Assembly (NCBI RefSeq): GCF_000143415.4
Contig: NW_003314282.1
Coordinates: forward strand, 35,700-99,699
Direction: 5' to 3'
DNA length: 64,000 bases
DNA from: Selaginella moellendorffii
Taxonomy: Eukaryota > Plantae > Lycopodiophyta
In this document: positions 1-35,124 of the stretch, piece after piece
How positions within the stretch are numbered: position 1 is the stretch's first letter
Layout of the letters: each line of letters begins with the position of its first letter
The notes under the pieces: generated by a model
Database searches by the model: none
Told to the model about the DNA's origin: nothing
The model's input: the letters and a program-made list of their open reading frames with translations, nothing else
Position numbers and translations under genes: made by a program

Positions 1-1200
1 CCCTACCTGTGCTGACTTTCTTGATAAATGTGGTCTGTACTAGCAAGTGAGTTGCTCTTCGGCCAAGGTTAGTCTCATACTAGAAGAATCCTTTGCAATC
101 CTTCCATTCCCATTCTACCAAATCCCATTTCAGTTTTTTTAGTGTTTGGTGGTGCAACCACTAGAGTTTGGCATATTGTCATTCTGGTATTGCCAAGTCT
201 ATGCATGTTGTCTTCTTCTCCATCTGAATGATGTAAACTAGCTTGGCACTGCTCATATCCAGGAGTTCCTCATATTAGGAGTGATTATAGGGAGAGGCTA
301 TTCAGCATATCCCGCCTTGAAGATTAGTCTGGAAACCCTGTTAGGAAGTGCATAGATGATAGGGTCATTTAGCTTCCATCAGCAATAGGCTGGCATCTCA
401 GATATCTATAATGTCTTTGGGCATGCCCACTTGGCTTTGTGGAAGGCAGTTTGAAATTTTTGCATCCTATGTTCCAAGGCATCTAGGCTGTAGAAGGCTT
501 TAATCCAATCGTAGTTGCTAATCCTTTATTGTTCTTGGATTATAGTATCAACCTCTGTGGAAGTGCATAGTCCTACTTTGTTTAGGTCCCTTTAGGTTTG
601 GTCTAGGCCTCGTTCTTCCATTTCGCTAAGCATTTTCCCATTCACTTGGAACCACTTGTTAAGGAAGAGGGGTGCTAGTCAAGCTATTCTTTGGAGTGGG
701 GCCATTTTTGCACTAACTTACATTTGAATTGATTCTAGATTTTGAAGAGCTTTCCCAAAATTGTGTGGGCTAGCTTTTTATTTGAAACAGCTATTGTTCA
801 TCTGGTGTCCAGTCTTGTTGAGTGTGTTCTTGATGATCTAGAAGGACCTTGAGGAGTTAGTCACGTATTAGCAATTTTGAGCACTTGCATGAAGATTTTG
901 AATAGGAGTGCTTTGCATTGTTCTTTGATGTCTATGATATTAAGGCCAACTTCATGCTTAGGTAATGTGAATAATTGCCAATTCACTTTAGCTCCACCAT
1001 GCAAGACACATAAGGAGCCTTTCCAAACATATACCCTAATGAGCTGATTCATTTCATGGATTGTCCAAGAACCAGATTGCACCAAGTATAATGTTGTTTG
1101 TGACAACGCAACATGCCAAGATAAATAGGTTCTTCCTTGCCCAAAACTTAAATTAGTCTCTTAGTTTTGTCACTACCTTTTAGTTGTCTAAATTGAAATC
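1..1200 (-). mobile_element. Degenerate non-LTR retrotransposon (L1/Tx1-like LINE) ORF2 fragment, region C-terminal to RT
   Basis: Minus-strand translation across stops and frameshifts gives KLRD*FKFWARKNLFILACCVVTNNIILGAIWF, then VWKG...AKVNWQLFTLPKHEVGLNIIDIKEQCKALLFK. This matches the plant LINE ORF2 pattern W..K.LS..GR...N / W...LPK..GGL.I.D...ALL.K. Confidence 0.7.
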
Positions 1201-1299
1201 TAAGGTAACAAGTTGTCTCATCCGGGTCCATCGTGCCCTAGGTCAGTATTTGGCCAAGAGGTAGCCAAAGTCTTATGGATTTAGACTAGTTTACTTTTG

Positions 1300-2000
1300 A
1301 GACAATTACATTATTGAAGAAGTCTAAGTTTTGCTTGAAGTCTTGAAAATTTGCATTCCTAGACTAAGAGTCATTCTTTCTTTAAGTTGGAAATCTTAGA
1401 CTTTTGCAATGGTTGATCTATTAATCATTTTGCTTAAAAATCATTCTATTTTCAAAAGCCATTGCAAACTAGTGAAGGGGTTGGAGTTAACTTTGTTAGC
1501 TTGGACCTTAGTAAGTAGTTTGTATGATGCAAAAATTTGGGGTTAAGGCAATTGAGTTGATAATATTTGGTGTTGGCATAAAAAAGTGGCTATTGCCCTT
1601 TTTTAGAAAAAAATGACCTTTGTGCCTTTTTTTTATAGTGTTATATTTAGTGGCAAGTTGCACTTTGCATTTTATTAAACTCTATAAGAGTAATGAACTC
1701 TCACTGATTTTGATTTTGTTTTAGTGGCCCTACATCTTAGCCAAGGATAGTGATATCCAACTTAGTATTTTGTGGTTGAAATGTTAGTACCTATACTATA
1801 ACTTTGTCTATTAAAAGGTTGTGTACTATATGAGTTTATATTATGATCTTCACTTTAGTTTCAACTGAGTGTTGATCATGTATGGCTAGCCTCTTTGATT
1901 ATGCTCAAAATTATTGGCTATATGTGTTATTGAGCTTATCGTTGTTTGATCATATTTGAGTAGTTATTTTATTTATACTTATACTAAGAGCTATTTTTTT
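1300..2000 (+). mobile_element. Decayed fragment of the family-B LTR-element internal domain
   Basis: GTCTTGAAAATTTGCATTCCTAGACTAAGAGTCATTCTTTC and downstream sequence align by eye with 38421ff and 46778-47400. Confidence 0.7.
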
Positions 2001-2049
2001 GTTGGACAAATCCATAGTTTTAACATTCTTAGCCATGTTTAGCTAGTGA

Positions 2050-3160
2050 CATTTTCTCTTGAATAAGCCCATCATTTTGAGCATTCCCCTATGTCCCACA
2101 AGAGGTCCATCATTACACTCTTTTAAAGCTACCTTCCTTAGTTCCCCTTATGGAACATACACCCTTATCTATTTATGATATATGAGTCCATTGTATTCCA
2201 TATATCTTGTTTTCTTTTCCATAGGTGGCTCATTTCTCTGATGAGCATGCCTCTTGGTTCTTTAGCAACACTTCTTGTGCTAAACTATTATCCTTATATG
2301 CCATTTGCACATCATCCCAAAAAGTTGTTGTCACGCTAAATATTGCCAACTTTAAGTTTGCTCACCACTAAACTCCTATTTAGAAGTTTCTTCATTGGAA
2401 TCCTCCTTATACAAGGATTCCTTATCCATAATTTCTTGTTTGACTGGAAGCTCCATCTTCAAAGGAGATTTTATCTCTACCTTAGTTTGCTTATGCTTTG
2501 CATTAGCCATCTCTCAACAATATGCCTTTATTCTTTGTTAGAACTAAGGAAAAAACTTCAATACCATATTGTAAGTTACAAAATTTTCCTTTCCAATTTG
2601 TTATTTTACTTTGTTTATCTGACTATCACTACCTTGGCCTTACTTAAATCCTTTGCCAAGGTTCTCACCTATTGTACTAGCTCCTACTTGGTCTTACTTA
2701 GTTTCAACTACTCATTGCATGAACAACATAGTGTTAATTATCCATCCACAGGTTCCCAAATTCTCTCCCAATCCCTCTCTCTATGTTAAATTGGATTTAA
2801 AGTTTGGTTACACTTCCCGCATGCATAAGCAGTTAAACACATTAAACCTCTAGGTTTCTAACATCCATTGGTACAACAAAACTTGATTATAGAAGCTTTA
2901 AATTTTTCTTTTACTTGGGACCCCTAGGGGAAACACTATGGCATAATGGCCTGATATGCCCCCACTTCCATCTTAAAGGGAAGGCCCAAGCCCTTAAGAA
3001 GGAGTAAGGAAAAATGAATTACATAGTACTCAAGTGGGACATCACTCTATTTGAGTTGGGAACACTACAGTTGGTTTCCTTTCTAAAAGTGGGAGTTGTT
3101 CTTGAGCATTTTTTTGAGTGGCCTTTCTAGCACCACTTGAGTCTATACTCACTCCCACTT
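2050..3160 (-). mobile_element. Decayed Ty3/Gypsy-derived element (family D): LTR about 2569-3160, PBS, integrase Zn-finger remnant
   Basis: On the minus strand ...GGAAAATTTTGTAACTTACA-ATATGGTATTGAAG resembles the family-A LTR end plus Met PBS. About 2060-2230 translates NGLIYHK*IRVYVP*GELRKVALKECNDGPLVGHRG, a chromovirus-type integrase HHCC region. Confidence 0.6.
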
Positions 3161-3169
3161 AAAGCCCCT

Positions 3170-3944
3170 AACTTACCTTTGCTGTTTAGAATAAGACTAA
3201 CTCAATTTACCATTTAGTTTTTCTGAACACCAATATAGTTGCTAACTAACAAAATGCACGAATGCCAATAACACAAAGGTACAACCAACTATCAACACCA
3301 TCTTTATTAAGAAGTGAAATAAAATGTTAATTTTCATTGAGCCCAACTATTCACCAACTATTTGAACCACCACAAATGGAAAATCCAACTTCCATAATAT
3401 GCCCATAGAGATAATCTCACTTCACTCTCAACTCCAATAATGTTAATATTAAAGCATCATTTCAATATCATCAACACCACAACAAAGCTAACAGAAAGCA
3501 AGAGTGAATCACCACTCAGATAACACCTTATCAAGGAATGAATCACCATGTCCAAGACTCAATAAAATCTAATACAAACTAAACACAACTAAAAAATATT
3601 AACTAAGATGGAATCAAAATGGTAACATAAAGAAACCATGCAAGACTAACAACATGATCCTTTGCAACACTATATAGTAATGAGCTCATCATTACTAAAT
3701 TATTAACAAAATGAGTAAAGTGTTAATATTTTTTGAAGAAATTTACAAGCGATCATTAGTCACAAAGCAACTAATAATCACTTTTCTACTTAGTTACCCA
3801 TAATGGAGGCATTTATGGCGGACAGACTCACCATTTAGAATGTAGTGAGGGATTCCTTGGAATAGGCTCACCAAAGGTCATTTAATTTTGCAACCTAGAA
3901 GCGTCGAGACGTAGAATCCTACCTTGGGGAGGTGTGGTTGACCC
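3170..3944 (-). mobile_element. Decayed LTR-element internal sequence related to family B (inverted)
   Basis: The reverse complement of about 3170-3340 aligns with about 47950-48130. Confidence 0.55.
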
Positions 3945-4488
3945 NNNNNNNNNNNNNNNNNNNNNNNNNNNNNNNNNNNNNNNNNNNNNNNNNNNNNNNN
4001 NNNNNNNNNNNNNNNNNNNNNNNNNNNNNNNNNNNNNNNNNNNNNNNNNNNNNNNNNNNNNNNNNNNNNNNNNNNNNNNNNNNNNNNNNNNNNNNNNNNN
4101 NNNNNNNNNNNNNNNNNNNNNNNNNNNNNNNNNNNNNNNNNNNNNNNNNNNNNNNNNNNNNNNNNNNNNNNNNNNNNNNNNNNNNNNNNNNNNNNNNNNN
4201 NNNNNNNNNNNNNNNNNNNNNNNNNNNNNNNNNNNNNNNNNNNNNNNNNNNNNNNNNNNNNNNNNNNNNNNNNNNNNNNNNNNNNNNNNNNNNNNNNNNN
4301 NNNNNNNNNNNNNNNNNNNNNNNNNNNNNNNNNNNNNNNNNNNNNNNNNNNNNNNNNNNNNNNNNNNNNNNNNNNNNNNNNNNNNNNNNNNNNNNNNNNN
4401 NNNNNNNNNNNNNNNNNNNNNNNNNNNNNNNNNNNNNNNNNNNNNNNNNNNNNNNNNNNNNNNNNNNNNNNNNNNNNNNNNNNNNNNN
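3945..4488. other. Assembly gap (544 N)
   Basis: Run of N. Confidence 1.
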
Positions 4489-4604
4489 GGGGGGGGGGGG
4501 GGTTACAATATGGTAGGGATAATGAGGTCCATGATCAATCTTGAAGGAATTCTTCAATGGCACTTCTAAATCAACTTGAGGTTGGGATTAGGGTTAATGG
4601 CCTT

Positions 4605-5263
4605 GGATAGGAGTGAATATGGACTCAAGTGGTGCCAAAGAGGCTATTCAAAGAAATGCTTAAGAGAAACTCCCACTCCTAGAAGGGAAATCAACTATAG
4701 TGCCCCTAGCTCAAGTGGAGTGGTGCGCCACTTGAGTGCCATGTGGCTCATTGGTCCTCACTCCTTCTTAGGGGCTTGGGCCTTCTCTTTGGGGGGGGAA
4801 TATGGGTACCCATATTAGGCTGTTAGGCCACGGTGTTTCCTCTAGGGTCCCAAAGTAAGAGAAGCATCCAAGGCTTTGGATTAAAAAGGTCCCATAATCA
4901 AGTTTTATTGTACTAAGGGATGTTAGAAACCTAGAGGTTTGGTGTGCTTAGTTACTTATGACTATGAGAAATATAACCAAACTTTAAATCCAATTTAACC
5001 TAGGGAGGGGGATTGGGACAGAATTTAGGAATTTATAGATGGATGATTAACACTTTATTGTTTATGCAATGAGTATTTGAAACCAAGTAGGACTAAGTAG
5101 AAGCTAATATAATATATGAGAACCTTGACAAGGGAACTTAACTAAGGGGGGTATAGGGGTACCCATATTTGGCTGTTAGGACACAGTGTTTCCCCCTGGG
5201 GTCCCAAAGTAAGAGAAGCACCCAAAGCTTTAGATTTAAAAGGTCCCATGATCAACTCTTATT
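4605..5263 (+). repeat. Second family-D LTR-like copy (inverted relative to 2635-3160) with an internal duplication of about 120 bp
   Basis: 4607-5146 is a diverged reverse complement of about 2635-3160. 4791-4911 recurs at 5146-5263. Confidence 0.7.
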
Positions 5264-5425
5264 TGTAGCGCATGTGATCATGAGATGAGATTTAGATATA
5301 CTGTCACCATGGATCCTTGGAACCTTGGGGGATAAATGGGGATAAAATAGCCATTAAGGGCTCTCTCATCAAGCAATTGCCCCTTTTCCAGTTGGCTTAA
5401 GAGGAGAGAGATAAGGTGCGCTACA
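5264..5425 (+). mobile_element. Short (162 bp) LTR of a TRIM-like family
   Basis: Perfect 9-bp terminal inverted repeat TGTAGCGCA...TGCGCTACA. Homologous to 35125-35278, which is followed by a Met PBS, and to 41881-41981. No TSD seen. Confidence 0.8.
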
Positions 5426-5469
5426 GTATAATGGAAATATATTCTTCAAATTTCCATAAGGAATAAGGA

Positions 5470-6930
5470 AATTGCAGCTGGTTTGCATTTTTAGCATGCC
5501 AGATAGCAATCCAGCTTACTCAAGGTGATTAGGGAAGCTCTGTTGGTGGCCTTTGCGGATGATACTCGGACGTGCAACTGGTTATGCTACATTAAAGATT
5601 GGAAGGAGATGGTGGAGGTGGTGACATGGTTGAAAGACACCAATGATTTGTTCTTTATGATCGACGAGTACAATGTTTTGGACAATAGGACATCCAACAG
5701 TTCCCTTATGGAAGTTTGGCTTCATTTGGAAACTCTGGAGGAAAGCTCAACCTACTTGCATGGTGGTTTTGCAAGGTGGAATGAAGCTTTTAGCAGAGCT
5801 TTTAAGTCCACTTACACTAGCACCTACCATTGCAAATACACAACCTTCAGGCTTGAGGAGATCAAGCAGTACATCACCCAGAAGGACTTGCTGTCTGAGC
5901 CTAGTGGAATGTAGCCATTGACGGGAGGTTTGCCACTCATAATACGTGTTTTTGTGGATTGCTACATTGCAATAGTGAGTTCTTCAGATCATGATAACAA
6001 GGCTATAGAGAAGTTCCTATCTACCAAGGATGTTGAACAACAACAAAGGACTTTGGAACAGTGGGTGATGGACATAGCTGCCTTGGAACCTATTAGGAGG
6101 AGAAAAGTGGCAGCTGCACTATCGGATCTAATAGCTGGCAGAGACAGGATCAACTCTAATGGGTTCAATCCTCGGTGGATTATACAAAATGGAGACAAGT
6201 TTGCGCTGGTTTTTGATCTTGTGAAGGAAATGGTTGTGGCCACCGTTGGAATGCATTTCGGTAAGGTAGATAGAGATGCCTTAATGATGAAAGTGGCAGA
6301 GCAGCTCATTGAAGAATGCATGGCCACACACCTTGTACCATCATTGGTTGGACTTATGGTGGAAATGATCGTAATCCACATCGCAAAACAGTGGGTCCAT
6401 TGAAGGGAAAAAAGATTGAAGCTTTTCATTACTTCGACTCGAAGCTAGGATCAGTCCTAACACACTTGCCAACAACTATCCCCAACAGCTAGCAACATTG
6501 CTATGTTGACTTTCCGACTAAAAGAGTAGAAAGTGATTTGCTCTTCATTGATGTGTTTCAAGTTTCTATTGGGCCACAAAAGGGGATAAAAAAATGGTAG
6601 AGTGTAGACAAGTTCTTCAAGCTGGAGGATATGGGTCTTTATATAGGTGGCTATGTTCTAAAGAGTATTAGATGTGGTTTTCACTGGATTGGTGGAGAGG
6701 ATGATAAGCTAGATTGGTTTCCCTCAAGGCAGTCATCTGCTGGTAGTGTCAGCTACAATGAAATATATATTGTTTTCTTGGCAGTTGCAAGTCCCAAAGA
6801 TGTTGATGGTGTTTTCATAAAAGCACTTGAGCTGACATCTTTCCTGAAGAGGCAGTCAAAGAGCAACTGGAGAAGAGAACATGCTTGCTATGATCAAAGT
6901 AAAGTGTTCTATGCTAGTTACATGATATAA
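5470..6930 (+). pseudogene. Crinkler/RHS (CR)-type P-loop NTPase + PD-(D/E)xK restriction-endonuclease-like protein, 5'-truncated pseudogene
   Basis: NTPase part: ALLVAFADD, Walker-B-like LFFMIDEYNVLD, TGGLPLII (GxP). Nuclease-like part: GLMVEMIVI...DLLFIDVFQVSIG...SVDKFF...FHWIG. Motif order resembles CR-NTPase + CR-REase proteins. Contains stops and frameshifts; no Walker A seen (truncated by the LTR at 5264). Confidence 0.6.
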
Positions 6931-6999
6931 ATAAAAGCTAATCTTTTTGGTGATGATTTTTCCAAGGACCTTGGTGTGTTATGTTTATACAAGTTCTCA

Positions 7000-7804
7000 G
7001 CAAGCATGAAATCAAAGGATTCATATTGGTGTTGTTGAATGGCCAAATTCCTCCACCAATCGTGTTTTCTTACGGCTTGCCTTGACCCCTCTTTCGCTTG
7101 ACACCCACTTTGCACTAGGGAAGAGGTTGACAGGTCATGGCTGCAAGTGCATGCATCATCCCTACAATCAAGTCTTGGCGCTGTGCCACCCAAGAAACGC
7201 GCATTGCTTAGTGTAAGCTCACCTTTGCCAAGTTTATATGTACATGCCATTATTTGCGGGGCAACTCATTATATTGTAGCTTGTGAGCTAGCTACCTCCA
7301 AAGAATCCTATGCAATATTCAACACATATACACAAGCTATTGGTCAATTTGGAAGGCCCAAGCGCATCCGGAGCGACAATGCTCCAGAGCACAATGAGGT
7401 TGAGAGGGACATGGTCCACTATTGGGGTCCTATAGCTAGGAGCTTCATACATGGGACATCAACACATAACTAGGTACTCATAGCATTAGAGTTTTTCCAA
7501 ACAAGGACTAAATCAAATTTGTTTTGCAGCACATAGAGCATTTGTGGAGAGAACTCTTTGAATGTGTGGTGTGGTTTTATAAGCATTTTTTTGAGTCCAT
7601 GGAAGACATAGGAATTCTTGATGTATCTAATCCATGACACAACCAGAGTCTACATTGTGTCTTTGCTCCGTACCTCAAGAAAAATATTTCACACTGGGTT
7701 GCAACATAGAACCTCCATGAGATCCGTCCATATTGATGTGGTGATTACTTTAGACCATCTTATGTTCTTGCAAATTTATTGCAACCGATGGAACGAGAGT
7801 TTGG
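7000..7804 (+). pseudogene. IS3EU/IS481-like (rve integrase-core) DDE transposase pseudogene with a spliceosomal intron
   Basis: LYVHAIICGATHYIVAC...AIGQFGRPKRIRSDNAPEH...SFIHGTSTHN*, GT-AG intron 7474-7529, then HIEHLWRELFECVVWFYKHFFESMEDIGILDVSNP*HNQSLHCVFAPYL. Matches the eukaryotic consensus IHGxIDG...P.RVRSD.G.EN...G.S.HNQRIERLWR...E..G.LD..N...LH.VF.P. Confidence 0.75.
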
Positions 7805-7925
7805 TGTAAGCAACCAAAAAGAACGATTCGAGAGACGGTCCATAGGGTTCAAATATAGAGGGAAAGGGCTCATGAATAAGAGTGCACCCCCTTTTCCAAT
7901 CGGTTAAGGGTCTTAGGATAGTTGG

Positions 7926-7981
7926 AGTTAAGTGTCCTTGAGTTTGAATAGTACTGGGTTGGGTAACCTCCCAGAAAGTCC
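7926..7981 (+). promoter_or_regulatory. 5S rRNA-derived Pol III internal control region (A box, IE, C box) in the Cassandra LTR
   Basis: AGTTAAGTGTCCTTGAGTTTGAATAGTACTGGGTTGGGTAACCTCCCAGAAAGTCC is collinear without gaps with plant 5S AGTTAAGCGTGCTTGGGCGAGAGTAGTACTAGGATGGGTGACCTCCTGGGAAGTCC. Confidence 0.85.
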
Positions 7982-8007
7982 AAACTTAGGAGCTTACATT
8001 TGGTATT

Positions 8008-8250
8008 AGAAAGGTATCAGGTCCGACTCTGTTGGTTGGCTTAGGGGAATCGCACCACATGTTGATTGACATCTGGCAGATCCAGTTTACTCCCATTGGG
8101 CTCAATCCGTTGGGGTAGGGTGTCAAGAGAAAGGTATCAGGTCCGACTCTGTTGGTTGGCTTAGGGGAATCGCACCACATGTTGATTGACATCTGGCAGA
8201 TCTAGTTTACTCCCATTGGGCTCAATCCGTTGGGGTAGGGTGTCAAGAGA
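8008..8250 (+). repeat. Tandem duplication, 2 x 120 bp, in the Cassandra internal domain
   Basis: 8008-8127 and 8128-8247 are identical except for one C/T. Confidence 0.95.
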
Positions 8251-8399
8251 GCGGGGCTCTTAGGAGAGCTACAGCTCTTAGCTTCCATTCATGAGGGTGT
8301 GTAAGGAAGCATGGTGGATTGTAAGCAACCAAAGGGAACGACTTGAGAGATGGTCTATATGGTTCAAATGGGGTTCAAATAATTCTTCCAATTGATTCG

Positions 8400-11300
8400 C
8401 GTCATTTAACCTGAGGCAAGGCTTCTAGTGCACACTCCCCCAATCGCAGGACCACCGCCCAAGCAAGAGCGCTACAGCTGTAATGGTGGGTAGCTTCTCC
8501 TTGATCAGGTTTGCATAACCAATCCCTTGTGGTTTCTAGGCTCGAAACAAGAATGCCGCACACCTCAACAGCAGTAGACACTATGCAGGAAACACCTTGC
8601 AAACACGCAGCCAAGCACTCAATGTTCTACAATCAGTACAGCAAACAGTCCCATGAGACACACGCCAGCCACTTGATTTTCCAAGCTCTGTAGCAGGGAC
8701 ACCAACTCCAACAGCATCCCATCCACAACTCCCGACTACATTTGAGCAAGCAAAGTGCCGCCTATCATTGCATACACTGCAACATATGCCGAACCTCTAG
8801 CATGTTTCGTTCTCCTCGTCTTCCCTGGAAAGCAGCAACCCGAGCATCCGAAATGAGCAAGTCCAAATGCCTCATGCCCACGGTGTTGTCCAATCTGGAA
8901 TGCTACCACCAACAACAACTACAGGAGGTACTCATGGAAGCCCATATAGTGCCACTAATACCAGCCCCGCAACTCTACCAGCCATTACAACTCTCGCAAC
9001 TCCATCTACCGATACAAGTGCCAATACCTGGCCATCTACCTCCCGAAGCAACAAGCGGTCTAGCTCAGTAAGTTTTTCATTTGTACCCATCTTTTTTTCA
9101 TGTGTTTTTCTGTGTAGGGTGAGTTGACAATGCCGTCACACCAGTGAGCTTATAGTTCCCCATCAGCATTCCACAACTACTCCCAAGGATCGACATCATC
9201 ATCTAGTGGAGCTTCAACATCTAGATATGTTCAAGCTGACCCTCAAGGCGGGCTGCCATGTGAGCCACAGGTATAACATGACCTTATACACTCTTCAAAT
9301 TTTTTTTCTTTGGATTTGTTTGACTCATTTTCATTTCACTGTGCCAGACTCTCTCACCACTTATGGCTGCAGTGCACACCTATGCCAATAACAATCGGCA
9401 GTCCTTATTTTGTTGTCGTGGATATTGTGGTAGTTGATCCAAAGTCATTGGTGGGATGTCGTCTATGACACCCTTGGTGCCCCGGCCGTTCATCACAGTT
9501 CCTGTCACCAAGTGGATTGCAATCCCGAAGACTTGGCATGTAGACTTGTATGGGTGGAAAAGAGAGCCATTTGTGAAGGTGGCGGAACTTGATGAGCTGG
9601 CAGTGGACCTCCTAGAGCGTCTCATACGGGGTGGCTTATACTCTAGTATTCCTTTCCAACCCGGCACGGCCCAACATGCGATTCTACTATCATTCCAAGC
9701 ATCAAGAATCCAACCTTCATCCATGACAAACCCAGGAGCATTTGTCCGGCGTGCAAGGCAGTCCAATGGTGGTGAGGCCCATGTCGAGTTTGCAAAATTT
9801 GGCCTCAGCTCTATCCAGCCTTGCTACTGGCCTCCTCAAACATTATTGGGGAGCTATAGCAAACAAGGCTAATAGCAACCGGGCAACAGTAATATACCTA
9901 TATAATGTTATGGAATATCTTACTGACAAACATTAGCTAAGTTATCAAAAACAGGCCTGAGCACTCGAGGAGAAGGATGTTTGTGAATGTAAGTTTTTTT
10001 TTTTTTTTAAGTTCCCTCCTCATAAATATATATTGTGGTCTTTGCAGTTGTAGCTACTACAAGTACCTTGAATGCAAATGATGATCCTTTGGTGATAGAG
10101 CCAGTTCTCCCAAGGCCAACCACACAAGAACCAAACTAAGATGAGAATAATGAAGAAGAAAACTATGTGGATGAAAAAGACATTCTTCCATTACTGGAAG
10201 AAATTCTCCCCACGCAAGACAACATGGATATCACCGGAGTCGAAGAACAAGGTGATAGTGGGGATGAACTACACCAAGTATCTCTGAAGACATCCTTGTC
10301 ACCAGAGATACTGGCTTCAGGCTATGCGGCTAGTAAGAAGCATTAACATAAATGAATATTTCCTTCATTTTCTAATTTCTGAATGGTAGTGTATGACAGT
10401 GACGGCAGAGGTCTTAAAGGCCATGGTGTGCCTCCACCCCCCTTTCTAGAGGGAAGTAACATTTTAGTCCTATTGAATATTTATAGAAAGTGTCTAAATC
10501 TACTCATAATATAGAGATTGTTTTAAACATGATGATATTATTTTTAAATTTACAATCTAAAACAATTCTATATTTAGTAAATTTTCATAATTATCCTAGT
10601 TGCTTAACAGCTTTTCTACAGTAGAGTAAGATAATTGAAAATTGTGCCATTCGAAATTGAACTAATGTTTGCATATAGATTATTAGAGTGTTAACAACAA
10701 TGGATTGATGCCACCAATGCATTTAATGAAGTTGTTTAGTTAACCACTCAGGATAGTGCCAACTTCATCATGTTGCAGCATGAGGAGGTTTCTGCCTTAC
10801 AGGATGCCACCACAACTCTTGAGGTGAGGGCATAAGGGGATGTTGAAGTTCTCTCACAGGTGCAGTGGTTGAAACACAAGCTTCTTGGTTTCTTTGGCAT
10901 GGAGAGCACAAGTGACGAAGAGAAGCTAGATGTTATTGCTAAACACCTTGAGTTCCATTAAGCTGGTGGTGAAATATTTCTTCGGCACGTACTTTTCAGC
11001 CAAGCCATGCCTCATTGGCAAGATTGGGAGAGTGTTCTCCTTCAGCTTGGCCTTTTAGAAACACAATATGAAGGTGTGTTTTATGACAACATAATTTAAT
11101 AGCTCCTTGTTGAAGGAAGTATCAATATGCCTCTTTTAATTGTTGAGTCCACAATAGCATGGTTCATTGGGAAGAAGTACATGTATCTATTTCTTAGCAC
11201 TTAGTACCACCTTATTATTTTGTGCAAGGACCTACGTAGGAATTGGGGGGGCTGCACAACAATTAAAAGAACTATTTGACACTGCTGAAACACTATATTG

Positions 11301-12722
11301 TAAATTTTCCCATTTTTGCATTGAGAAGGCCATACTTTGGCCATACAGACTTGCTCGTACATATTTAAAGCCTTCTTGCATTCTGGTAAGCAATGGATTG
11401 CCTATGAATTAGAGTTCCCTCACTTGTTCTTCCAGATTGCACCAAACAATGAATTTAGTTATTTTTAATTCACCTTCAATACTAATCTCCACACACCAAA
11501 TTACAAAGTGGTCTATGTGTCTGAGATTGGAGGAGCTTTGGTGTTGGAGGAAGCCACAATAGATGTGGCTGGGCCATATGCAAAAGCTATTAGGGAGGTT
11601 GTTTGCCAAATTCCAGGATCAGTAAGTCTAATTTTCATTTGGCTCACTAGGGTAGCTTTGTGTTACAAACGTGTGGACTATTTATGCTTAGGGAAGGAGC
11701 TATGTATTGGCATCCCAAGATGAAAGTGCATTCTAGGATGTTGCGACAAGAAGAGTAAGATGTGGTAAGTTAAGTGTAAAGCATAAGTTTTATATGCTCC
11801 TCATTTTTATATGCACAAGCTATCTTTGTAGGATGGTTGCTATTCTAAGCATCCAAATGCACAGGTATCTCGCGGGTGTACAATTGCAACATTGGCAATT
11901 GCAACTAGAGAGGTTCCAAACGAGAATAACTGACGACTTGCCCGAGGAGGACTGTATGAGATGGACCTCAAGGCATGCACACCACATATTTGGAATGCAC
12001 TCAACCAATTGCAAGGTGCATCAAGCCTAAAGAAGGAGGGCAATCAATGCAAGTCTGTGGATTCCATCCTAAAGGACCTTGCAATTACCAACTACAACAC
12101 AATACTTGAGTCTAGACTCACCAAACTTGATGAAGGTTATGAGTAGGCTATGGAGGCATGCGTGGCTACGGTGGCGTTACCTATTCATCGAGCCAAATGT
12201 AATGGGAAATTTACTCTAAGATGGCTTCCAACACTCAATACGCATGGAAGCTCATCAGAAGCCTTACAAGAGTCCAGCATTGTTAGGTGGGCTTTCATTC
12301 ATTGGGACAAATGCTTTGTTACAGGTCTTCTAGGTAAAGACAATTATTCCTCCCACGGAGTTCATCAACTGCTTAATCTTTGATAAGGACTTTGGAGAGA
12401 ACTTCCGTAGCTGGATTATGGACATCATTCGAGATAACTATTTACTTTCACAAACAACTAAAACTCTTGTATGTTTGAACATTTTATAGATATGAGCCCG
12501 AAAGAGTTATCCAAGTTCCATCACTTTGCGGTTGATTCTCTAGAGTTCTAACTGGGAGAGCCTATTTGGGTCCAAGTTGAAAGACAAGGTACATCATCTA
12601 CTCAATTTCCCAGGTTCTCCACATGCATATGAGAAGTTTTCTTCCCTTTAACATACCCATCAATGGAGTGGACCAAACACAAGGCACTCCAAAATCCAGA
12701 GAGCTTGTATGGATTAGGCTAA
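8400..12722 (+). pseudogene. Multi-exon pseudogene with S/T-rich and acidic regions and a C-terminal HECT E3 ubiquitin-ligase domain
   Basis: HECT motifs in order: EEATIDVAGPYAKAIRE (about 11548), MSPKELSKFHHFAVDS (about 12492), FPRFSTCI*EVFLP with Cys at 12624-12626, YPSMEWTKHKAL...YGLG* (stop 12720-12722). GT-AG introns and many stops. Linkage of the 8.4-11.4 kb exons to the HECT part is inferred. Confidence 0.6.
10460..10590 (+). repeat. Fragment of a family-B LTR
   Basis: TATTTATAGAAAGTGTCTAAAT...AAATTTACAATCTAAA...TATTTAGTAA aligns with 32750-32900. Confidence 0.7.
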
Positions 12723-12799
12723 TGTTGTGGAAGTACCATAATCTAGACACTTTCACAATAAAAATAGATAATTGTCTTGAAATATATTTCACACTTTGA

Positions 12800-13437
12800 A
12801 AGAGACTCTTTCCAATTTATTAGCAAAGCTAAAGGTAAGAAAATTCAAAATATTCCACAAATGCCCATTAGCCCTTGGTACCCTTTTAGCTTATGCCAAG
12901 GGTAATCACTATAGCTTTCAAAGCAGCTCCCAATTTAGGATCTAGGTCAAAACTATCGAGCTTGGGTGTTATATGATGCCCATCGACAGTTGAGGAACTT
13001 TTAACCTGTTTCATGGTAAAACCAAAATCACCCTCTGAGTTTATGAACTCATCCTTTCTTGCATCTCAAGCAGTAATATATCCCTTGCTATCACTGTCTT
13101 TAACAAAAATTTTCCCCTCGGTGATTGGCACAACATTAGAAGTAATTTTGGGCTTCTTTGTCGGAGGGATTGTTGAGCCTTGAGAGGAGGCATCATATAG
13201 AATCCTTGGTGTTGTCCCTTGTTGGATCCATTGTTATGCCTCAAAGAAGTCATAGAATCCTCTCTAGTTTGCCATGCTAGGAGGAAACCCAGAAACCTCA
13301 AATATTGCAAAAGGGTTAGAGCATATAGGAAACTGTCACAAATCTACTCTTACCAAAGTGAGCATGAGCTTCCAATCTCTAAAAACTTTAGTTCTTCGGC
13401 TGCAACGCACAACATACATTGGATAGTTTTGCCTCAT
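12800..13437 (-). pseudogene. Pseudogene with an N-terminal RNase H1 hybrid-binding (Cauli_VI-like) domain
   Basis: ATG at 13437. Exon 1 MRQNYPMYVVRCSRRTKVFRDWKLMLTL, 57-bp intron (GTAAG, 13353-13297), exon 2 VSGFPPSMAN*RGFYDFFEA*QWI. Compare consensus YYAVR.GR..GVY..W..C..QV.GF....YK.F....EA..W. The 3' extent is uncertain. Confidence 0.55.
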
Positions 13438-13482
13438 GCTTGGAAACCTTTTTTACAAATTTCAAAATTAATAATAATTTTA

Positions 13483-13746
13483 CAATTATTATTAGAAAAT
13501 GTTGAAAGTGTCCATTGTAATTGCTCTTCTCACCTGAATGTTAATGCATGCAATTGCAACTTCCATATTCTCAAATCTCCTTCAGCAAGCTCCTCTTGAG
13601 AGAACTCCAGGTCCAATTTGAAACAATTATAATTGGAAAATGTTGAAAGTGTTTATTGTTATCCTAAATGTTACTACATGCAATTGCAACTTCCACATTC
13701 TCAAATCTCCTTTAACATGCTCCTCTTGAGAAAATTCCAGGCCCAA
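13483..13746. repeat. Diverged tandem duplication, 2 x about 130 bp
   Basis: GAAAATGTTGAAAGTGT...CATGCAATTGCAACTTCCA..TTCTCAAATCTCCTT...CTCCTCTTGAGA occurs twice. Confidence 0.8.
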
Positions 13747-14701
13747 ACATCAACACTATGCACCTTTGTGTAGTACACAATTGAAGTATGAACCCCACCA
13801 ATTCATCGAATTGGTTAGACTTTAACCTACTTTTGAGTCATATGCAAATTTTTTAGGCATCATGGTACAAAACTAAAGTGTTGAGAGAGCTACACTAGAA
13901 ATCAATGGTAATGAAGGATAAACTCAATAGGATGCATTAAATACATAACTCCAAACAATATATATCTATGGTTTTGCAATGGAGCTAAATGGAATTCACT
14001 TACACTAGCTATGAACACTATGTTAAAAAAGGTGTGCCAAAAAAGGATAATTCAGTTCTTTTGCCATAAGCGCCAAGAGCAAGATGTGAGAATATAGTGC
14101 TCTAGATAAAGTAATATAGTATGCAATTTGGTCAATTGTCCATTTGGTTTGCAACATTAACAACTTGCTAGAATGCATGGGATGAATGGGTCTATGCGCC
14201 ATGAATGGCTCCATTCCATACATAGCATGGGTCATTGTTATGGGCATGATGCCCCATCCGGGGCATAAGGATTGGATATTCGCAAAATATTCTATGCCTG
14301 TGTTTCCATTGTAAAATCCACCTTTTTACAAATTGCACGCCATAGGTTGTTCGCAATTAGGAGAATGTCATCGGCATAAAGGAGTTGCAAGATCATCCAC
14401 TTATTTTCTCTTATTATTTTCGGAGAAGTAACGGAAGACTCCAGCTACATGTTTGCCAAGGTGAAACAGAGAAAATTATATTCTTGCGGCTTGTAGCTTT
14501 TACATAGCAAGTATTCTCGCGCAAAGGAAGAAGCCCTGCTGGAAAAGAGAAAACTTATTGGATGTGATCACGAATTCATCGAAAAAGAAAGATGACGGAT
14601 CAAAGCTCGCTCATTTGCTCCACTCACTCACCCCGACTCTCGGATTGGAAGCAAAACAAACGAGAGCAAACCTGGAACAAGCAAGAAAACCTGGAAAGCA
14701 G

Positions 14702-15745
14702 CTACGGCTGCTGGTGAGAATCGATAAACCCGTGCTCCACAAGCACCTTCTCACGCTGTGCTTTCTCCAGATCCGAGTCCACCATCATGGCCACCAGCTG
14801 CTTGAACGACACCTTGGGCTTCCATCCCAGCGCACTCCTGGCCTTGGCCGCCGAGCCGCGGAGATTATCCACCTCGGTGGGCCGAAAGTACCTAGGATCA
14901 ATCTCGACGTGCTCCCTCCACTCGAGACCAACGTAGCCAAACGCCTCCTCGAGAAACTCCTCCACGGTGTGCGACTCCTCGGTGGCCACCACGTAGTCAT
15001 CCGGCGTCTCCTGCTGGAGCATGAGCCACATCGCCTGGACGTAGTCACCGGCGAATCCCCAGTCCCTGCTCGCCTTGAGGTTGCCGAGGAAGAGCTTCTT
15101 CTGGAGCCCGACTTTGATCCGCCCGACTGCGCGAGTGATCTTGCGGGTGACGAAGTTCTCGCCGCGCCGGGGGCTCTCGTGGTTGAAGAGGATGCCATTG
15201 CAAGCGAAGAGACCATAGGCCTCGCGATAGTTGACGGTGTACCAGTGCGCGGCCACCTTGGCGGCGGCGTAGGGGCTCCGGGGGTGGAACGCGGTGGCCT
15301 CGTCCTGGGGCGGCGGCGTGGAGCCATACATCTCGGAGGATCCGGCCTGGTAGTAGCGGATCTGGCGACCCGTGGTGGAGCAGTGGGTCTTGACGGCCTC
15401 GAGGAGGCGGAGAGCTCCAGTGGCGACGACGTCGGCGGTGTAGTCGGGATTCTCGAAGGAGACGCCGACGTGGGACTGGGCGCCCAGGTTGTAGACTTCG
15501 TCGGGGAGGATGGCGTCGACCCACTTGCGCAGGGCGGAGGCGTCGGCGAGATCGCCGTAGTGGAGCTTCATCCGGGCGGCGGAGATGTGGGGGTCGATGT
15601 AGATGTGATCCAGGCGCTGGGTGTTGAAGTTGGAGGAGCGGCGGATGATCCCGTGGACCTCGTAGCCTTTGGAGAGGAGGAACTCGGTGAGGTAGGAGCC
15701 GTCCTGGCCTGTGATGCCGGTGATGAGCGCCTTCTTGCAATCCAT
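14702..15745 (-). CDS. GMD: GDP-mannose 4,6-dehydratase (GMD/MUR1 family), intronless
   Basis: [24 protein letters not shown]...AQSHVGVSF...SSEMYG...PRSPYAAAK...[21 protein letters not shown]...[13 protein letters not shown] is at 15745; the track start at 15790 is TTG. Confidence 0.97.
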
Positions 15746-16059
15746 CTTGAGCGAGCGCGATCCAAATTTTCCAGATCTACACTCTACCAAGGAGGGATGG
15801 AGCCCTAAACACTTTCTTTCTCTTTTCTTCGTTAACAGTTGCGTAACCAGAAGGGGATGTTATACTACATCCAGAGATGCTGGAATTTTTCTCCGGCCTT
15901 CCCGCGTGGTTGTAATGTGATTCTCTTGCGGTAGGCGCAAGTTAGGAGATTTTGGCTGGCAATTTTGACTTTGCCTTGGCCGAGATCATGCATGCCATAT
16001 TCTCGCTGAACCCAACAACTTTACTTTAATGCTACCCGTAATCTAAAGGGGAAGCGAGA

Positions 16060-18660: not shown

Positions 18661-19137
18661 TATACCACTGATCTTATGTTTTCAGTCTCTGATCAGGGCA
18701 GAGCATGCCCTATCCAATCAAACAACCCTGATGCGTGTGCTACAACAATTTAGCTTTCAATAGATGAATTATAACATTTTCCCCAAGAGCCAGTCTAATT
18801 TCTCGTCTTCTTGGTGTCTTCTACGCTAATCTCCAAGGCGTGGATTGAGTTGTCTGGATCATCTTCCAAAGCTGCGCCGAAGATCTCCGGACAAATCTAA
18901 AATGTTGTTTGATGTTGTTTAGGTGGTCGTTCCAAGGATGATTTATAAGGAGTCTAAGCCTTCTCAAGGTGCGACCTATTTTGTTTCAGAGTGGACTTAG
19001 ATAAGTTCCTCGCTCCTTCTTTTTTTCCCACTAGGCCATGATCTATTTGAATAGATCTATAGAGAAGTTTCTTCTCGTGAGATGAGAAGCATTGCTGTGT
19101 TTAAGCGTTTCTTCTCGATTCGCGAACTCACAAACCA

Positions 19138-21854
19138 ATGGCAGCATCGCCGCCCCAAGTGAATCGCGAATGGTCCGGCGCTCAAGAGATTTCACTCTCT
19201 TTGGATGTTGTAGCGGCTGCGAGAACTCACCTGGAGTTTCTATCGGTGGTACACGCGAATTACAAGCTTTTTGAGGAGCCTGCTTTAAACAGAGCGATTG
19301 AGAGGTATATCTTCTACACTTTGTAAGCTTGTGATTAATTTTCTTTGTCTCTCCCAAAACTAGATACCAATATTGTTGTCTTCCATTGCTAGCCAGTTCT
19401 TCGTCAAGACTCCTTCCACCACTTGACTGCGAATGGATTTGGCACTGCCATCGCTTGAATCCAGTGAGTTTTAAAAGGATACTTCCACCAGATTGCTGAT
19501 ACTTGTACGCTGGAGTAGATCCAATATGCCGAGGATTGCCAAAGACTTTTTGGAAAAATAGTGGACGCACCTTGCCTGGAGAAGTCCGAGAATGCTCTTC
19601 AACAAAGTATGGTTGCTTGGACTTCCAGCTTTCCAGATGAACCGTATGAACTCGACCTTTCTGGCGAAGAGAAAATCTCTTTGACTAGACCATCGTACTC
19701 CGGAAGATCGAGTGGCATCTCCTACAACTTGGCCGATGCGGTTCTCAGGCAGAAAAAGTTTTACTATCAGGTACGTGATGGTTTGCTTTTAGACCTATGA
19801 AACTCGGAACTCATCGCCATACCTATAACAGGTTTCCGGGCCGCACTACGTTGACGAGAACTTCTTACGCGCTGCGGTTGCTCGATACAAGGCGTTTCTC
19901 CATCTCGTCGTCCGACACACATCCGCAGCATCGGTGTTCTTAGTTCCCACTTACGACATTGATTTGATATGGCACACGCATCAACTTCATCCTATGAGTT
20001 ACAGCAGCGACCTCACACGGTTATTTGGAAGGATCTTCGAGCACGATGATACGGACAGTAACAGAGATCCCGGAGGAAAATTGGACAAAGGATTCGCAAA
20101 AACTCTTTCTCTGTGGGAATCTTTATATGATTTGCCATACGAGAAGGCAGGGTGCATGTATAGAGGGGAGCCGCCAGCAGCGATTTCGGGAACGATTGCT
20201 TATGATCCCACCAAGCTCGCGAGTCTCTCTTGCAGAACCAAGGTTTCACTGAAAGCCAGGAACACTATCCAGGTATATGGTCAGAACTTTTGCAAGTTCG
20301 ATATGAATCACTGATCGTTCAAACGCAGGTTCGTCTCTCCGTGCGAGGTTCCAAAGGTTTACCGCAGGATGGCAGCGTCTCTTTCGTTTTCAGCATGCTA
20401 AAGCAAACAAGTTTTGAGCTCCATAGCAAAAAGCGCGAAGGCTCATCGCCGAGGAATGTAGTTTCGTCCATGACACCCGAGCTATCCACCGAGGGGCTTG
20501 TGATCACAGCTCGGCAGAAGGGGATGTTCACGTCCAAAACGCTGGGACGACTCGTCATTCCGTGGAAAAACCTCAGCGATTCCGAGACGCAGTCGCTTGG
20601 CGGCTGGTTTCCAATGCAAGACACAAAGAAGGACCGAGAAGTGTCGGTGCTGGTTTATATCTCCGCTACTCCTCCGGTCACTGCGAATTATCTCTTGAGA
20701 AGCGTGAGAGTGAGAGACACTGGAGAAGATGGAGCCACTCGCAGCAGTTTTAGTTCTCAAGGCGTGTGGATAACAAGGACTGTCTTCGATCATGCCAACA
20801 AGGAATGTTTCGTCATTCGTTGCCGGTGAGTTTGCCAAGCTTTTCTTTTTTGTGGATGACATGAATCGCTCGATCTCTCCTTTGCTGTCTAGATACAAAC
20901 GTGAAGGAGGTAAACGTCTCGCAGACGCTGATAAAGTCGTGAATGTTCATCGGACATACAAAGGCTCCCACTCCGTTGATGGTAATACAACGATCGCAAA
21001 GTTTTCACTCTTCTTTTTTTCTCAATTCTTCCTAGGTGAGGTTCTTGGATCTGCAAGGCAGCTCGAGAGACCATCCAAGGACTCACGAAGGTGGTCTCTT
21101 CTGGACGATGCCATAGTTTTAGTCGTGGAAAAGGACGCGAGTGACAAGCAGTGGAACACGAGACCAGGAATGAGCTTGAATATGGAGATTAAGTCCGAGG
21201 ACTGTCCAGTAAGTTGTCATGTTCGAAGAACATGATCATTAACCGAGTTATCTCTTTTTGCATATTAATAAGATCGCGCTTCTTCCCGGTCGGCACTTGG
21301 AGTTTTCTGTGCCTGGATCATCGGACCAAATGGAAGCATGCTTTGTGACAATGGTGAGATTCACAAGCGACGCACCTCAAGGGAAAGCAACAGCGCTCAT
21401 CAACTGGCGCTCCGGTGGCATGGAGGTGAAGTTTCTTCCATTTTTTCTTTCCATTCTAGCAAACTAAGTGTATAGATTGATCCCAACGAGGATGTGCTAC
21501 TTGTGCTCCTTTTTTCCGCAACCATAAGCATGTCCGTGTCTGATATTCTTGGCAAAGGAATTCCTCCGTGGGCAAAACCAAGAGCTTTGGAAGAAGATCA
21601 AGATCACTGGGGTGGGCCACGAGAGTATGCTTGTCGAGTCTAAATTCTAAGTGCATTGTTTAACAGGTGCCGTGAAGATCGACCATGATGGTCTTGGTGG
21701 TGAAATCTATTCTTGGTACAATGATGGTTTCTCCTATGTTGGTGGCTGTGGTATTAGTGCTGGCGGCGGTTGTGGTGGTGGTGGCTGTGGCGGTGGTGGA
21801 TGTGGAGGTGGTGGTGGTGGTGGATGTGGTGGTGGATGTGGTGGTGGTGGGTAA
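19138..21854 (+). CDS. GRDP1: Glycine-rich domain-containing protein (GRDP1-like, DUF1399), about 10 exons
   Basis: LPPLDCEWIWHCHRLNP, FLVPTYDIDLIWHTHQLHP, EHDDTDSNRDPGGKLDKGF, PYEKAGCMYRG, ALLPGRHLEF, GKATALINWR, C-terminal GGCGGG repeats. GT-AG introns of about 50-70 bp. Confidence 0.92.
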
Positions 21855-32388: not shown

Positions 32389-33535
32389 TGTCGTGAATGT
32401 GACTTCAAGTATCGAAATTACCTGTCGGTCAGTCTTTACGAACACTCTTTCCTTACTACCACGACGGCAGAAGGTCGGTATTGCTGGACCCTTTATTAGT
32501 CCCTCTTGTGCTAGTGGAGTTAATTGGGCATTTCGAGTGTATTTAGACCGGACGAGCATAAGGACGGAATTCTTATGTGTTATTAGCTAAGCATACTTAG
32601 CCCAGTAAGGAGTTCCCGTCTTGTTGTGTCTTGCATTTGCTAGTGACAAGAACCCCCACGATATTGAGATTGGTCCCTCAATATTCGCTAAATGATAGCT
32701 TACCATGTCTACCAAACACCCTCGCTATCATGCCCTTTGTGTTAGTTTCATTTCAGTCCCAAATGCTATTTATAGAAAGTGTCTAAATTTGCTCATTTGG
32801 CATATTTATGGAATGTAGAGATCGTTTTAAACACAATGGTGTTCATCTCGTATCCAAATTTGCAATCTAAAGACATTCCATATTTAGTAAGTTTCAAGCT
32901 TGTCCTAGAGACTAACTTCTGATATTAAGGGAGGCTTGGGGTGAAAGCCCAAAGCGTGTGTTCCTCAAGGGGGGGGGGGCTATGGGGGGTTCTAAATGTA
33001 TAGTAGGGATAGTGGGTAGGTTGGGCATGGCTGACCAACCTAAGGCATAGTTTAGCTCCCACTTGTATGCTCGTCTTTGTTTGGCATCTAGCTTAAATCT
33101 AAGCCCAAGTTCCATTCCATGCTAGCTAGTGGAGTACCTATGTCCTTATGTTAAGCCACCGGTATGCCGAAATAGCACTAGACTCTGTTTGGCTCCGTTT
33201 TGCATGCTGATCCTGGCATTGAGATGTTGGTTGCTCTAGGATTGTTCCAAGTTGCTCTAGGCTCCTATCCCTTCACTCCTTGGGTTATATGCTCAGGAGT
33301 CGTTCTGTGCTTTAGTGCTAATGCTCCTTGGCTCCATGCTTGGGAGTTTTGCACCGTTCCTTTGTTCAGTGGCCCAAGGCCCTGAACCTCGGGTTCTGCA
33401 CCATTGTCCTATAAACACGTGGCATGTGACACATGGCATATAAAATGTGGCATATGGAGGGTTTAGGTTTTGCTTGATGGTGTTATCTTATGATAAATCA
33501 TCATAATATAAAGGGTAAAAACCATGTATGCTACA
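32389..33535 (+). mobile_element. Solo LTR, family B, inserted in the RT of element C
   Basis: TG...CA termini, TSD CCATC (32384-32388, 33536-33540), homologous to 35537-36686. Splits the RT motif FQQMM|DKVL. Confidence 0.95.
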
Positions 33536-35124
33536 CCATCATCTGCTGGAAAGTTGTTAAAGCATTGTTCAAACCATACAATATCACCAAGAATTAGTAC
33601 AAACCAAATAGTGTACAAAAAGTAGTCTTAGGAATATTTTCTTCAACTATCGGTACTTGCTAGTACTTAAAAGCAAGATTTAACTTGGTGAACTAACAAT
33701 TTTTCTCTAGACAATCCAAGAGATCAGTAGTGTGAGGAAGAGGGTACACATTCGGGATAATCACTTTGTTTAATAAACAATAGTTGATGCAAAAATAAAT
33801 ACTCTGATCAGGCTTTGTCACAAAATGGGGTTTATATGCCCAAGGACTCCACAACTTTTGGATAACATCATTTTCCAACATTTCCTTGACGTTTGCATGT
33901 AAAATCTTGATTTTTTTGAGTGACTAATGATGAATTAAAACCTTGATTGGACGAACATCCCTAGTTAGAATAGGATGACGTGTTACAATCTTGGCCCCAA
34001 ACGACAAATCAAATTCAAAGAGATTGGCATACTCCTTCATGAGCCAATCAACTGATGCAATACAAAGACTGTCAGAGGGATTGGAAATGGGAAGAGAGGA
34101 ATAAATGGAAATATAAGATAAAGTAATAGGGAGACAAAAGTGATAGAAGTAGAAGGATGAAGAAGTACAAAAATGAGAGGAATAGAAGAAATATAAAGAA
34201 ATATGACATAAGGGGGAGAAGCCTCAAAGTCACATTTGGCATGATTGTGCCACAACCAATTTATATCAAGGATGAGGTCAAAAGCTTAACTTAGCATCAC
34301 CCACAATGTTTGTAACTCAAGCTTAAAATCACCTACATACACAATTAGGTTTGCCTCATCCCATGCACATGTTACCATAAAGAATGAAAATTGGCTTTAT
34401 TGCACGACACAAATGTAGATGGCAATGTCAAGCAATAGAAGGTAAACTCAAACTTATATCAACCAACACAGAGAAAATAATAGAAGATTTTTTGTTATAA
34501 AAATGAGCTTGGAAAGTAATCATTGAATGAATTGATGTTGAGTGAGCCCCTTGATGATACTCCCGAAAGAAAGATAGAGGGGTCATTGACTTATTCGTGC
34601 AAGGTCCTTCCACAATTGTTTGTATGTCCAAATGCATGTTTAAAGATGTCTGAGAGAATATTTTAATTTTTACGAGTGGTTGTGCTCAAACCATTATATG
34701 AATGCAGTGCCATCCCTTGGAGACACATGGGAAACTCATGTAAACCTCAAGCATCATCCTAAGAATGATATATGGCAATTACCGTGAAGTGATCAAATCA
34801 ATAGTACATATTATCCCAAGATTCCCATGGAAGAATTCTGGTTGGATGCAAGGATTGGTAGCAAGAGTAGAATGAGATGTACCATATGCTGTAAATGTTG
34901 CCATTAACTGAGTCTGATTGTTTAGTTACAACCATATAGCATCGAGCAATTGCACCAATTACTACTCTAGAATCAAAGGAGGAGGAGGCTGCTACTCTAC
35001 TATGAAGATGAATAAAAAGAAGTTGAGAAAAAGTTAGAAGAAAAAGAAGATTTAGACAATGTAAAAGCTAGATCTAAACCAAAAATATTAAATCCTAGCA
35101 CTCCTCAGGGACAATTAAAGTTAT

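Follow-up and report, generated by a model that had tools for sequence, protein, structure and literature searches.

The closest described relatives of the element reported here are the IS3EU/GingerRoot transposons, which have TA..TA termini and usually a 6-bp target-site duplication (TSD), rarely one of 7–8 bp (PMC10045372, PMC6839031). GingerRoot was first described in Selaginella (PMC6839031). In S. lepidophylla, 28.6% of the intact GingerRoots carry gene fragments, which are 84–1654 bp long and are often accompanied by loss of transposase sequence (PMC6839031). Here we analyse a 64-kb window of the S. moellendorffii genome (contig NW_003314282.1), by which we mean the whole stretch of 64,000 nucleotides. 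A preliminary description had proposed that 5470–13437 of this window holds one dead multi-gene transposon, with genes for a Crinkler/RHS-type NTPase joined to a restriction endonuclease-type (REase) domain, an rve-type DDE transposase, a HECT ubiquitin ligase and an RNase H1-type hybrid-binding domain. The first of these labels refers to a second described group, the Crinkler/RHS-type (CR) NTPase-REase effector modules, which, according to papers that cite them, Zhang et al. reportedly set out in 2016. The CR clade is marked by a Crinkler header or an RHS context, and its relatives occur in oomycetes, fungi or other eukaryotes.

Comparison with other loci leads us to a different reading. We consider it very probable that the stretch contains two independent, neighbouring relics: a dead, 5′-truncated transposon of the IS3EU/GingerRoot type (7232–14344, plus strand), and a 5′-truncated pseudogene fragment of a Selaginella-specific NTPase (5465–6834, plus strand). 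The relics of the transposase, the long HECT-like gene and the convergent small gene form one unit, 7232–14344, and the pairing of transposon and NTPase is a chance adjacency. All the relics are disrupted by stops and frameshifts, as the preliminary description had seen. Coordinates are those of the window unless a locus is named, and gene-model annotation was taken from scaffold GL377586.1, which is 100% identical over 4489–14600. The loci used for comparison were six element copies, fetched via paralogous rva_4 gene models (L004–L009), and four NTPase loci (L002, L003, L010 and L011).

The extent of the transposon was defined by homology to these copies. In each comparison with L004–L009 the homology starts exactly at 7232; it ends at 14305–14344 and is interrupted by private insertions. 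The window copy is 85–93% identical to L004, L005, L006 and L008. Complete copies are approximately 8.5 kb long and, to the left of this, have another 1156 nt in common, so that the window copy corresponds to family positions 1157–8541 of the complete copy at L005 9784–18324. The three-gene unit recurs with shared boundaries at no fewer than six other loci, and in L005 the gene models are arranged as an rva_4 gene (plus strand), a 733-residue gene (plus) and a 151-residue gene (minus). The co-occurrence that the preliminary description suggested looking for was thus found for these three genes at at least six other loci, whereas the NTPase is unlinked to them everywhere else; what survives of the proposed single dead element is the unit of transposase, HECT-like and hybrid-binding genes. 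The element is also longer than was thought, continuing beyond 13437 to 14344.

The copies share inverted ends of the form TATGGCATGCAATTTGTAAAAGGGTG...CCATA (TATGG...CCATA), which are imperfect terminal inverted repeats (TIRs) of about 26–55 nt with TA...TA termini. Both ends were identified in L004, L005 and L008, left ends in L006 and L007, and the right end in the window. This right TIR (14306–14344, minus strand), located using a terminus pattern search and the termini of five copies, ends ...GCACGCCATA and has the outer flank GGTTGT; its 26-nt core, 14319–14344, has two mismatches to the family left end. The terminus pattern matched the window once, at this right end, compared with 0.00 matches expected by chance. 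A search of the entire 64 kb gave no left TIR, even with 6/26 mismatches allowed, the sole match being the right-end inverted repeat, and the left 1156 nt of the family have no counterpart anywhere in the window. Inverted-repeat searches around 5470–13437 found no TIR pair, because the left end is missing. Alignment of the flanks of other copies, advised in the preliminary description, did reveal shared TIRs, together with matching or nearly matching 5-mers on either side of three complete copies: TTTTT/TTTTT (5/5), CAAGC/CAAAC (4/5) and CACCG/CGCCG (4/5). Counting the last A as part of the target shifts the comparison to 6-mers, which match at 6/6, 5/6 and 4/6 positions. The window copy is one-ended.

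Some further features of the family were seen in these loci. In L004 one sequence, 2 kb or more in length, stands both before and after the complete element (5950–7986 and 19081–21123). Both copies of this sequence start with a right-end TIR and an identical flank (CAAACAAAATTG), which suggests that a unit of element plus flank was duplicated in tandem. L006 has its left flank in common with L004 and also contains a second, inverted partial copy of the element. P0013, considered as a divergent subfamily on the basis of protein identity, was rejected as such; it is a copy of the same family with a 7.3-kb insertion.

The transposase relic was identified correctly in the preliminary description. 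Pfam rva_4 matches at 7102–7470 (E = 6.3e-10, profile positions 24–102) and at 7512–7634 (E = 1.1e-5, positions 103–137), and the profile is split exactly at 102|103 by a predicted 56-nt GT..AG intron at 7474–7529. The remainder of the gene, which contains this rva_4/rve DDE core, occupies 7232–7809 on the plus strand. Exon 1 ends at 7473, and its last codon, CAG in L005, has become a TAG nonsense codon in the window; exon 2 runs from 7530 and has one more stop and a frameshift after 7634. The paralogous gene models P0008–P0010 carry PF24764. The N-terminal exon in L005 gives a weak match to HTH_17 (E = 0.0021), and this part is missing from the window. At the other end of the gene, a repeat at 7810–8382 replaces 587 nt of family sequence, corresponding to the 3′ exon of the transposase.

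The second gene (8483–12719, plus strand) is long and has several exons; it was delineated from gene models, from translations of five copies and from the loop pattern described below, and its HECT-like region covers approximately 11500–12719. The models are 387 residues long in the window and 733 residues long in L005. Its first part has no Pfam hits. HECT domains have a catalytic cysteine in a loop of the form LPxxHTCxNxLxLPxY, approximately 30–35 residues from the C-terminus, and an aromatic residue at position −4. Here, an N-lobe-like motif, EEATIDVAGP, lies at about 11545 and a C-lobe-like stretch, MSPKELSKFHHFAVDS, at 12490–12548, followed by a catalytic-loop pattern at 12606–12656 which is interrupted by a stop at 12630–12632. 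The loop reads FPRFSTC(T/I)..EVFFPLTY, with an aromatic residue at position −4, and the tail from the loop to LYGLG-stop is 29 residues long in the window, where it ends at 12719. In L005 the loop is FPRFSTCTREVFFPLTY, and the tail to LYGLG-stop is 34 residues long. The translations of the five copies contain the HECT-like motifs in order along the whole length of the domain, and the loop pattern occurs once per copy, at the homologous place, in all five and in none of 200 shuffled sequences; the pattern was taken from the textbook consensus, although it was written after the data had been seen. Searches with statistics gave a different picture. None of the exon pieces from the window, L004 and L005 was matched by Pfam HECT (PF00632) at E values up to 10, there is no Pfam hit on record for the annotated models of this gene (294–787 residues), and PDB sequence searches with the HECT-like pieces gave nothing relevant. 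The queries in these searches, and in those for the hybrid-binding domain, were separate exon pieces, which makes them weak tests. An AlphaFold prediction for a 186-residue piece (L005:15533–16090) was unusable, with a mean predicted local distance difference test (pLDDT) score of 39.4 from an alignment that was too shallow. The gene ending in HECT of the preliminary description therefore stands as a likeness in the catalytic loop and not as a match in Pfam or PDB statistics, and we regard the HECT-like nature of the second gene as probable but unproven.

The third gene (12886–13437, minus strand) is convergent with the other two, as had been described. Its start codon is at 13437–13435, and the model in L005 is 151 residues long. 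The first exon codes for YPMYVVRCSRRTKVFRDWK, which resembles the N-terminal half of an RNase H1-type hybrid-binding domain. In the window, Pfam Cauli_VI (PF01693) matches at 13339–13452 on the minus strand over profile positions 2–18 with E = 0.029; the L005 homologue matches with E = 7.2e-4 and 20.2 bits, where the cutoff is 21, over 18 of the 44 profile positions (2–19). The hybrid-binding domain of human RNase H1 (3bsu) was matched with E = 0.77, and was the only PDB match of fewer than 60 residues. The second half of the domain (...RGFYDFFEAQQWI) would lie in the next exon, after a short intron, as ...RGFYDFFEA-QWI, interrupted by two stops; when the second exon was searched alone, a hybrid-binding domain was not detected. 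Of the convergent RNase H1-type gene originally proposed, the gene itself is present, and the domain match is half a domain at about the threshold of detection.

The NTPase fragment (5465–6834) corresponds to residues 177–635 of the 639-residue paralogue P0002, with approximately 70% protein identity (tblastn). At the nucleotide level (blastn) it is 82% identical to L002, L003 and L010, only over 5465–6834, and the similarity stops at the stop codon of the paralogues. There are in-frame stops at 5912, 6490 and 6598 and a frameshift near 6391. The paralogues P0002, P0003 and P0004 have both a Walker A motif (GNVGSGKT) and a Walker B motif (FFVVDEY); the window has lost Walker A and has kept Walker B (LFFMIDEY, 5648–5671). 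A relic of a P-loop NTPase, oriented as the transposon is, is thus confirmed.

The Crinkler/RHS and REase labels were not. Pfam found nothing significant in the window pieces and no Crinkler header, and its matches to P0002 are weak (AAA_22, NPHP3_N and nSTAND3, E 0.03–0.06). A nuclease domain of the PD-(D/E)xK type had no match in Pfam, PADLOC or the PDB. When the annotated model was compared by phmmer with 1.84 billion representatives, the only genuine relatives were four S. moellendorffii proteins; two Ig-repeat proteins that also matched were spurious. A PDB sequence and profile search with the NTPase profile returned nothing relevant, the AlphaFold prediction for P0002 was unusable (pLDDT 34.3, again from too shallow an alignment), an ESM Atlas feature search with two NTPase pieces gave weak AAA-like leads only, and a word search with pieces of the open reading frames (ORFs) returned only the local gene models, among them SELMODRAFT_413513 for the ORF at 5915–6400. 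The paralogues resemble the CR modules in having a P-loop NTPase followed by a β-rich C-terminus with a D...D...QK arrangement, possibly a nuclease. They differ in that no header, no relatives outside Selaginella (by phmmer) and no supported nuclease fold were found; moreover the window copy is without the P-loop, and the intact paralogues resemble ordinary host genes.

These intact paralogues are single or tandem host-like genes beside CHAT-protease and PPR genes. In L003 (7456–20298), L010 (10001–15136) and L002 they are tandemly duplicated, and behind each come first a fragment like a CACTA-type transposase (Pfam Transposase_21, included by fusion in models P0003 and P0005) and then a gene for a CHAT protease. 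Such a neighbourhood of NTPase and CHAT protease calls to mind the gene pairs of conflict or immunity systems.

The window copy of the transposon is immobile: it cannot move, because one end and the 5′ part of the transposase are gone, the 3′ exon has been replaced, and there are stops in all three element genes. It also has a private AT-rich insertion at 10459–10597 (139 nt, compared with 24 nt in L005, and related to stretches at 32749–32908 and 42504–42589) and a 62-nt deletion just inside the right TIR. In a codon-position test among copies, the differences were spread evenly over the three positions, as in neutral decay; since this was so for the transposase as well, the test is uninformative. 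When about 12% of the reads of each of three S. moellendorffii RNA-seq runs were compared with the stretch at 85% likeness, none fell on the element genes. The sole part of 7441–13440 covered by RNA-seq is the repeat at 7810–8382, and its reads come from diverged copies. This is an unrelated small repeat of high copy number, identified with repeat finders and present in L002, L003, L004 and L006; in contig word depth it exceeds the surrounding element 30–200-fold. Its length is about 570 nt, its ends are direct repeats of 50 nt, and a 120-nt tandem duplication, 99% identical, lies at 8008–8250. Insertions of this repeat also occur in other GingerRoot copies and close to NTPase genes. Public gene calls have been made on this dead DNA, namely SELMODRAFT_413513 (236 residues, 5606–6400) on the NTPase fragment and the 387-residue model (10221–12548) on the second gene. 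In SELMODRAFT_413513, the predicted intron cuts out an in-frame stop together with a conserved TGGLPL motif.

The preliminary description placed all four genes, including the NTPase-nuclease, in one cargo-carrying transposon, of which the window would hold a dead copy. The genes are indeed adjacent and co-oriented within 8 kb, and all have decayed to a similar degree, but we now consider this explanation extremely improbable. NTPase sequence is absent from each of the six other element copies (0/6), and the other four NTPase loci have no element DNA closer than 10 kb (0/4; these loci hold five genes, as L003 has two). In the window, the two blocks of homology, which end at 6834 and start at 7232, are separated by 397 nt of unique DNA (6835–7231) that has no match in any fetched locus by blastn at word size 7. 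In complete copies the left TIR is only 1156 nt upstream of the position equivalent to 7232, and therefore there is no room for a fourth gene. Judged by sequence comparison, the NTPase is a neighbour of the transposon and not its cargo; we place it outside the element because of where the two homologies end and start, and because the loci are unlinked elsewhere. The two relics might also have been united in a different way, by a Pack-type capture in which a 1.37-kb host NTPase fragment replaced the 5′ part of the element, the left end having decayed or being hidden in the assembly gap at 3945–4488. This has a precedent, since GingerRoots in S. lepidophylla often carry gene fragments of this size (PMC6839031); as in Pack-type GingerRoots (PMC6839031), host gene material (1.37 kb) accompanies a copy with transposase loss, and the fragment has the orientation of the element and abuts the truncated copy. 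Here, however, the fragment is not enclosed by any element terminus and so falls outside the recognisable element: there is no left TIR in the 64 kb at the relaxed threshold given above, and what separates the gap from the fragment is other repeats (an inverted repeat at 4610–5147 and a satellite at 5264–5427). We therefore think capture improbable, if less so than a four-gene element.

A different kind of doubt concerns the two accessory genes, whose ORFs could be unrelated proteins or non-coding DNA in which the HECT and hybrid-binding motifs are a chance resemblance. The negative Pfam HECT and PDB searches, the absence of any Pfam hit on record for models of 294–787 residues, the AlphaFold pLDDT of 39, the lack of codon-position bias and the lack of RNA are all consistent with this. 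Chance would nevertheless have to account for motifs that fit HECT in order over its whole length, for a loop, a 29–34-residue tail and an aromatic residue at −4 that fit HECT, the loop pattern being obtained in 0/200 shuffles, and for a Cauli_VI score of 20.2 bits from only 18/44 positions in a protein whose sole PDB match below 60 residues was the human RNase H1 domain. We regard a chance resemblance as unlikely, though appreciably less so than either of the explanations that join the NTPase to the transposon.

We therefore prefer the reading of two neighbouring relics, one of them a three-gene transposon, and note several points that weigh against it. The identification of HECT is without statistical support. 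The hybrid-binding match covers half a domain and is just below the Pfam cutoff. The even spread over codon positions means that there is no evidence from conservation for past selection on the accessory ORFs. With symmetric termini the TSD fits best at 5 bp instead of the usual 6 bp, and the TIRs, at about 26–55 nt, are shorter than the 100–150 nt reported for S. lepidophylla. Finally, the assembly gap upstream is 544 nt long (3945–4488), and could conceal a left end.

The assignment of the transposon to the IS3EU/GingerRoot superfamily (PMC6839031; Kojima 2023, PMC10045372) is based on an integrase/IS3-like DDE transposase (rva_4), on TIRs with TA...TA termini and an apparent short target duplication, on the Selaginella host, on a length of 8.5 kb that falls inside the reported 3.9–12.9 kb, and on copies that are many, old and decayed. 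The superfamily has a helix-turn-helix upstream of the core, where it lacks an HHCC zinc finger; the weak HTH_17 match in L005 may correspond to this. There are also differences, namely shorter TIRs, a TSD for which 5 bp is no worse a fit than 6 bp, and a spliceosomal intron within the catalytic core. In addition there are two further genes, and the GingerRoot paper has no mention of HECT, ubiquitin or RNase (PMC6839031).

Within the transposon, a tandem pair of subterminal repeats, each about 135 nt long (13482–13746), is conserved in the other copies. Outside it, an intact, intronless gene for GDP-mannose 4,6-dehydratase is located at 14702–15790 on the minus strand, with its 3′ end approximately 360 nt from the right end of the transposon. 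Upstream, an inverted repeat of 538 nt and 77% identity (2638–3155 and 4610–5147) lies on either side of the assembly gap, and is probably another foldback-like or TIR element whose middle is unassembled. A direct duplication of 118 nt is present at 4793–4909 and 5146–5263.

Immediately upstream of the NTPase fragment is a satellite-like repeat unit of 164 nt (5264–5427), which is also present at 35124–35266 of the window and in L004 and L006. Upstream of the L005 element it forms a tandem array at 5564–7194 with a period of about 344 nt. The unit is found within a few kilobases of three other GingerRoot copies, always outside the TIRs (for example at L004 5594–5769 and L006 1245–1899), and may mark satellite-rich regions in which the elements accumulate. 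It belongs to neither relic; it was considered as a lost end of the element and rejected, as it is outside the TIRs in L004 and L005.

An intact member of the family would comprise three genes. The transposase gene, which has an intron, would encode a helix-turn-helix at the N-terminus together with an integrase-like DDE core (rva_4); a long co-oriented gene would have a HECT-like domain at its end, and a small convergent gene would encode an RNase H1-type hybrid-binding domain. The transposase would be expected to bind the TIRs, excise the element and reinsert it with a target duplication of 5–6 bp. Action in trans would be expected of both accessory proteins, which, as a guess, might handle host chromatin or silencing proteins and R-loops or RNA:DNA hybrids. 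We think it about an even chance that the ancestral, active family encoded, together with its transposase, a HECT-type ubiquitin ligase of its own and a protein binding RNA:DNA hybrids; as accessory factors these would tag host proteins, such as silencing or repair factors, and engage R-loops during transposition.

The preliminary description knew of no such architecture in plants. The element belongs to a superfamily that has already been described (PMC6839031, PMC10045372), and it is the three-gene architecture that would be a new variant: in the searchable literature, the combination of transposase, HECT and hybrid-binding protein was not found for any DNA transposon, nor were there papers pairing IS3EU with HECT. 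Our analysis removes a false lead, in that there is no transposon here that pairs a transposase with a Crinkler-type nuclease. The value of the locus is in the family rather than in the window copy. If the accessory genes are confirmed, the IS3EU/GingerRoot elements of spikemosses would stand out as one of the few cut-and-paste transposons to carry a ubiquitin ligase of their own, and, if this is true, the manipulation of host protein turnover by a DNA transposon becomes testable.

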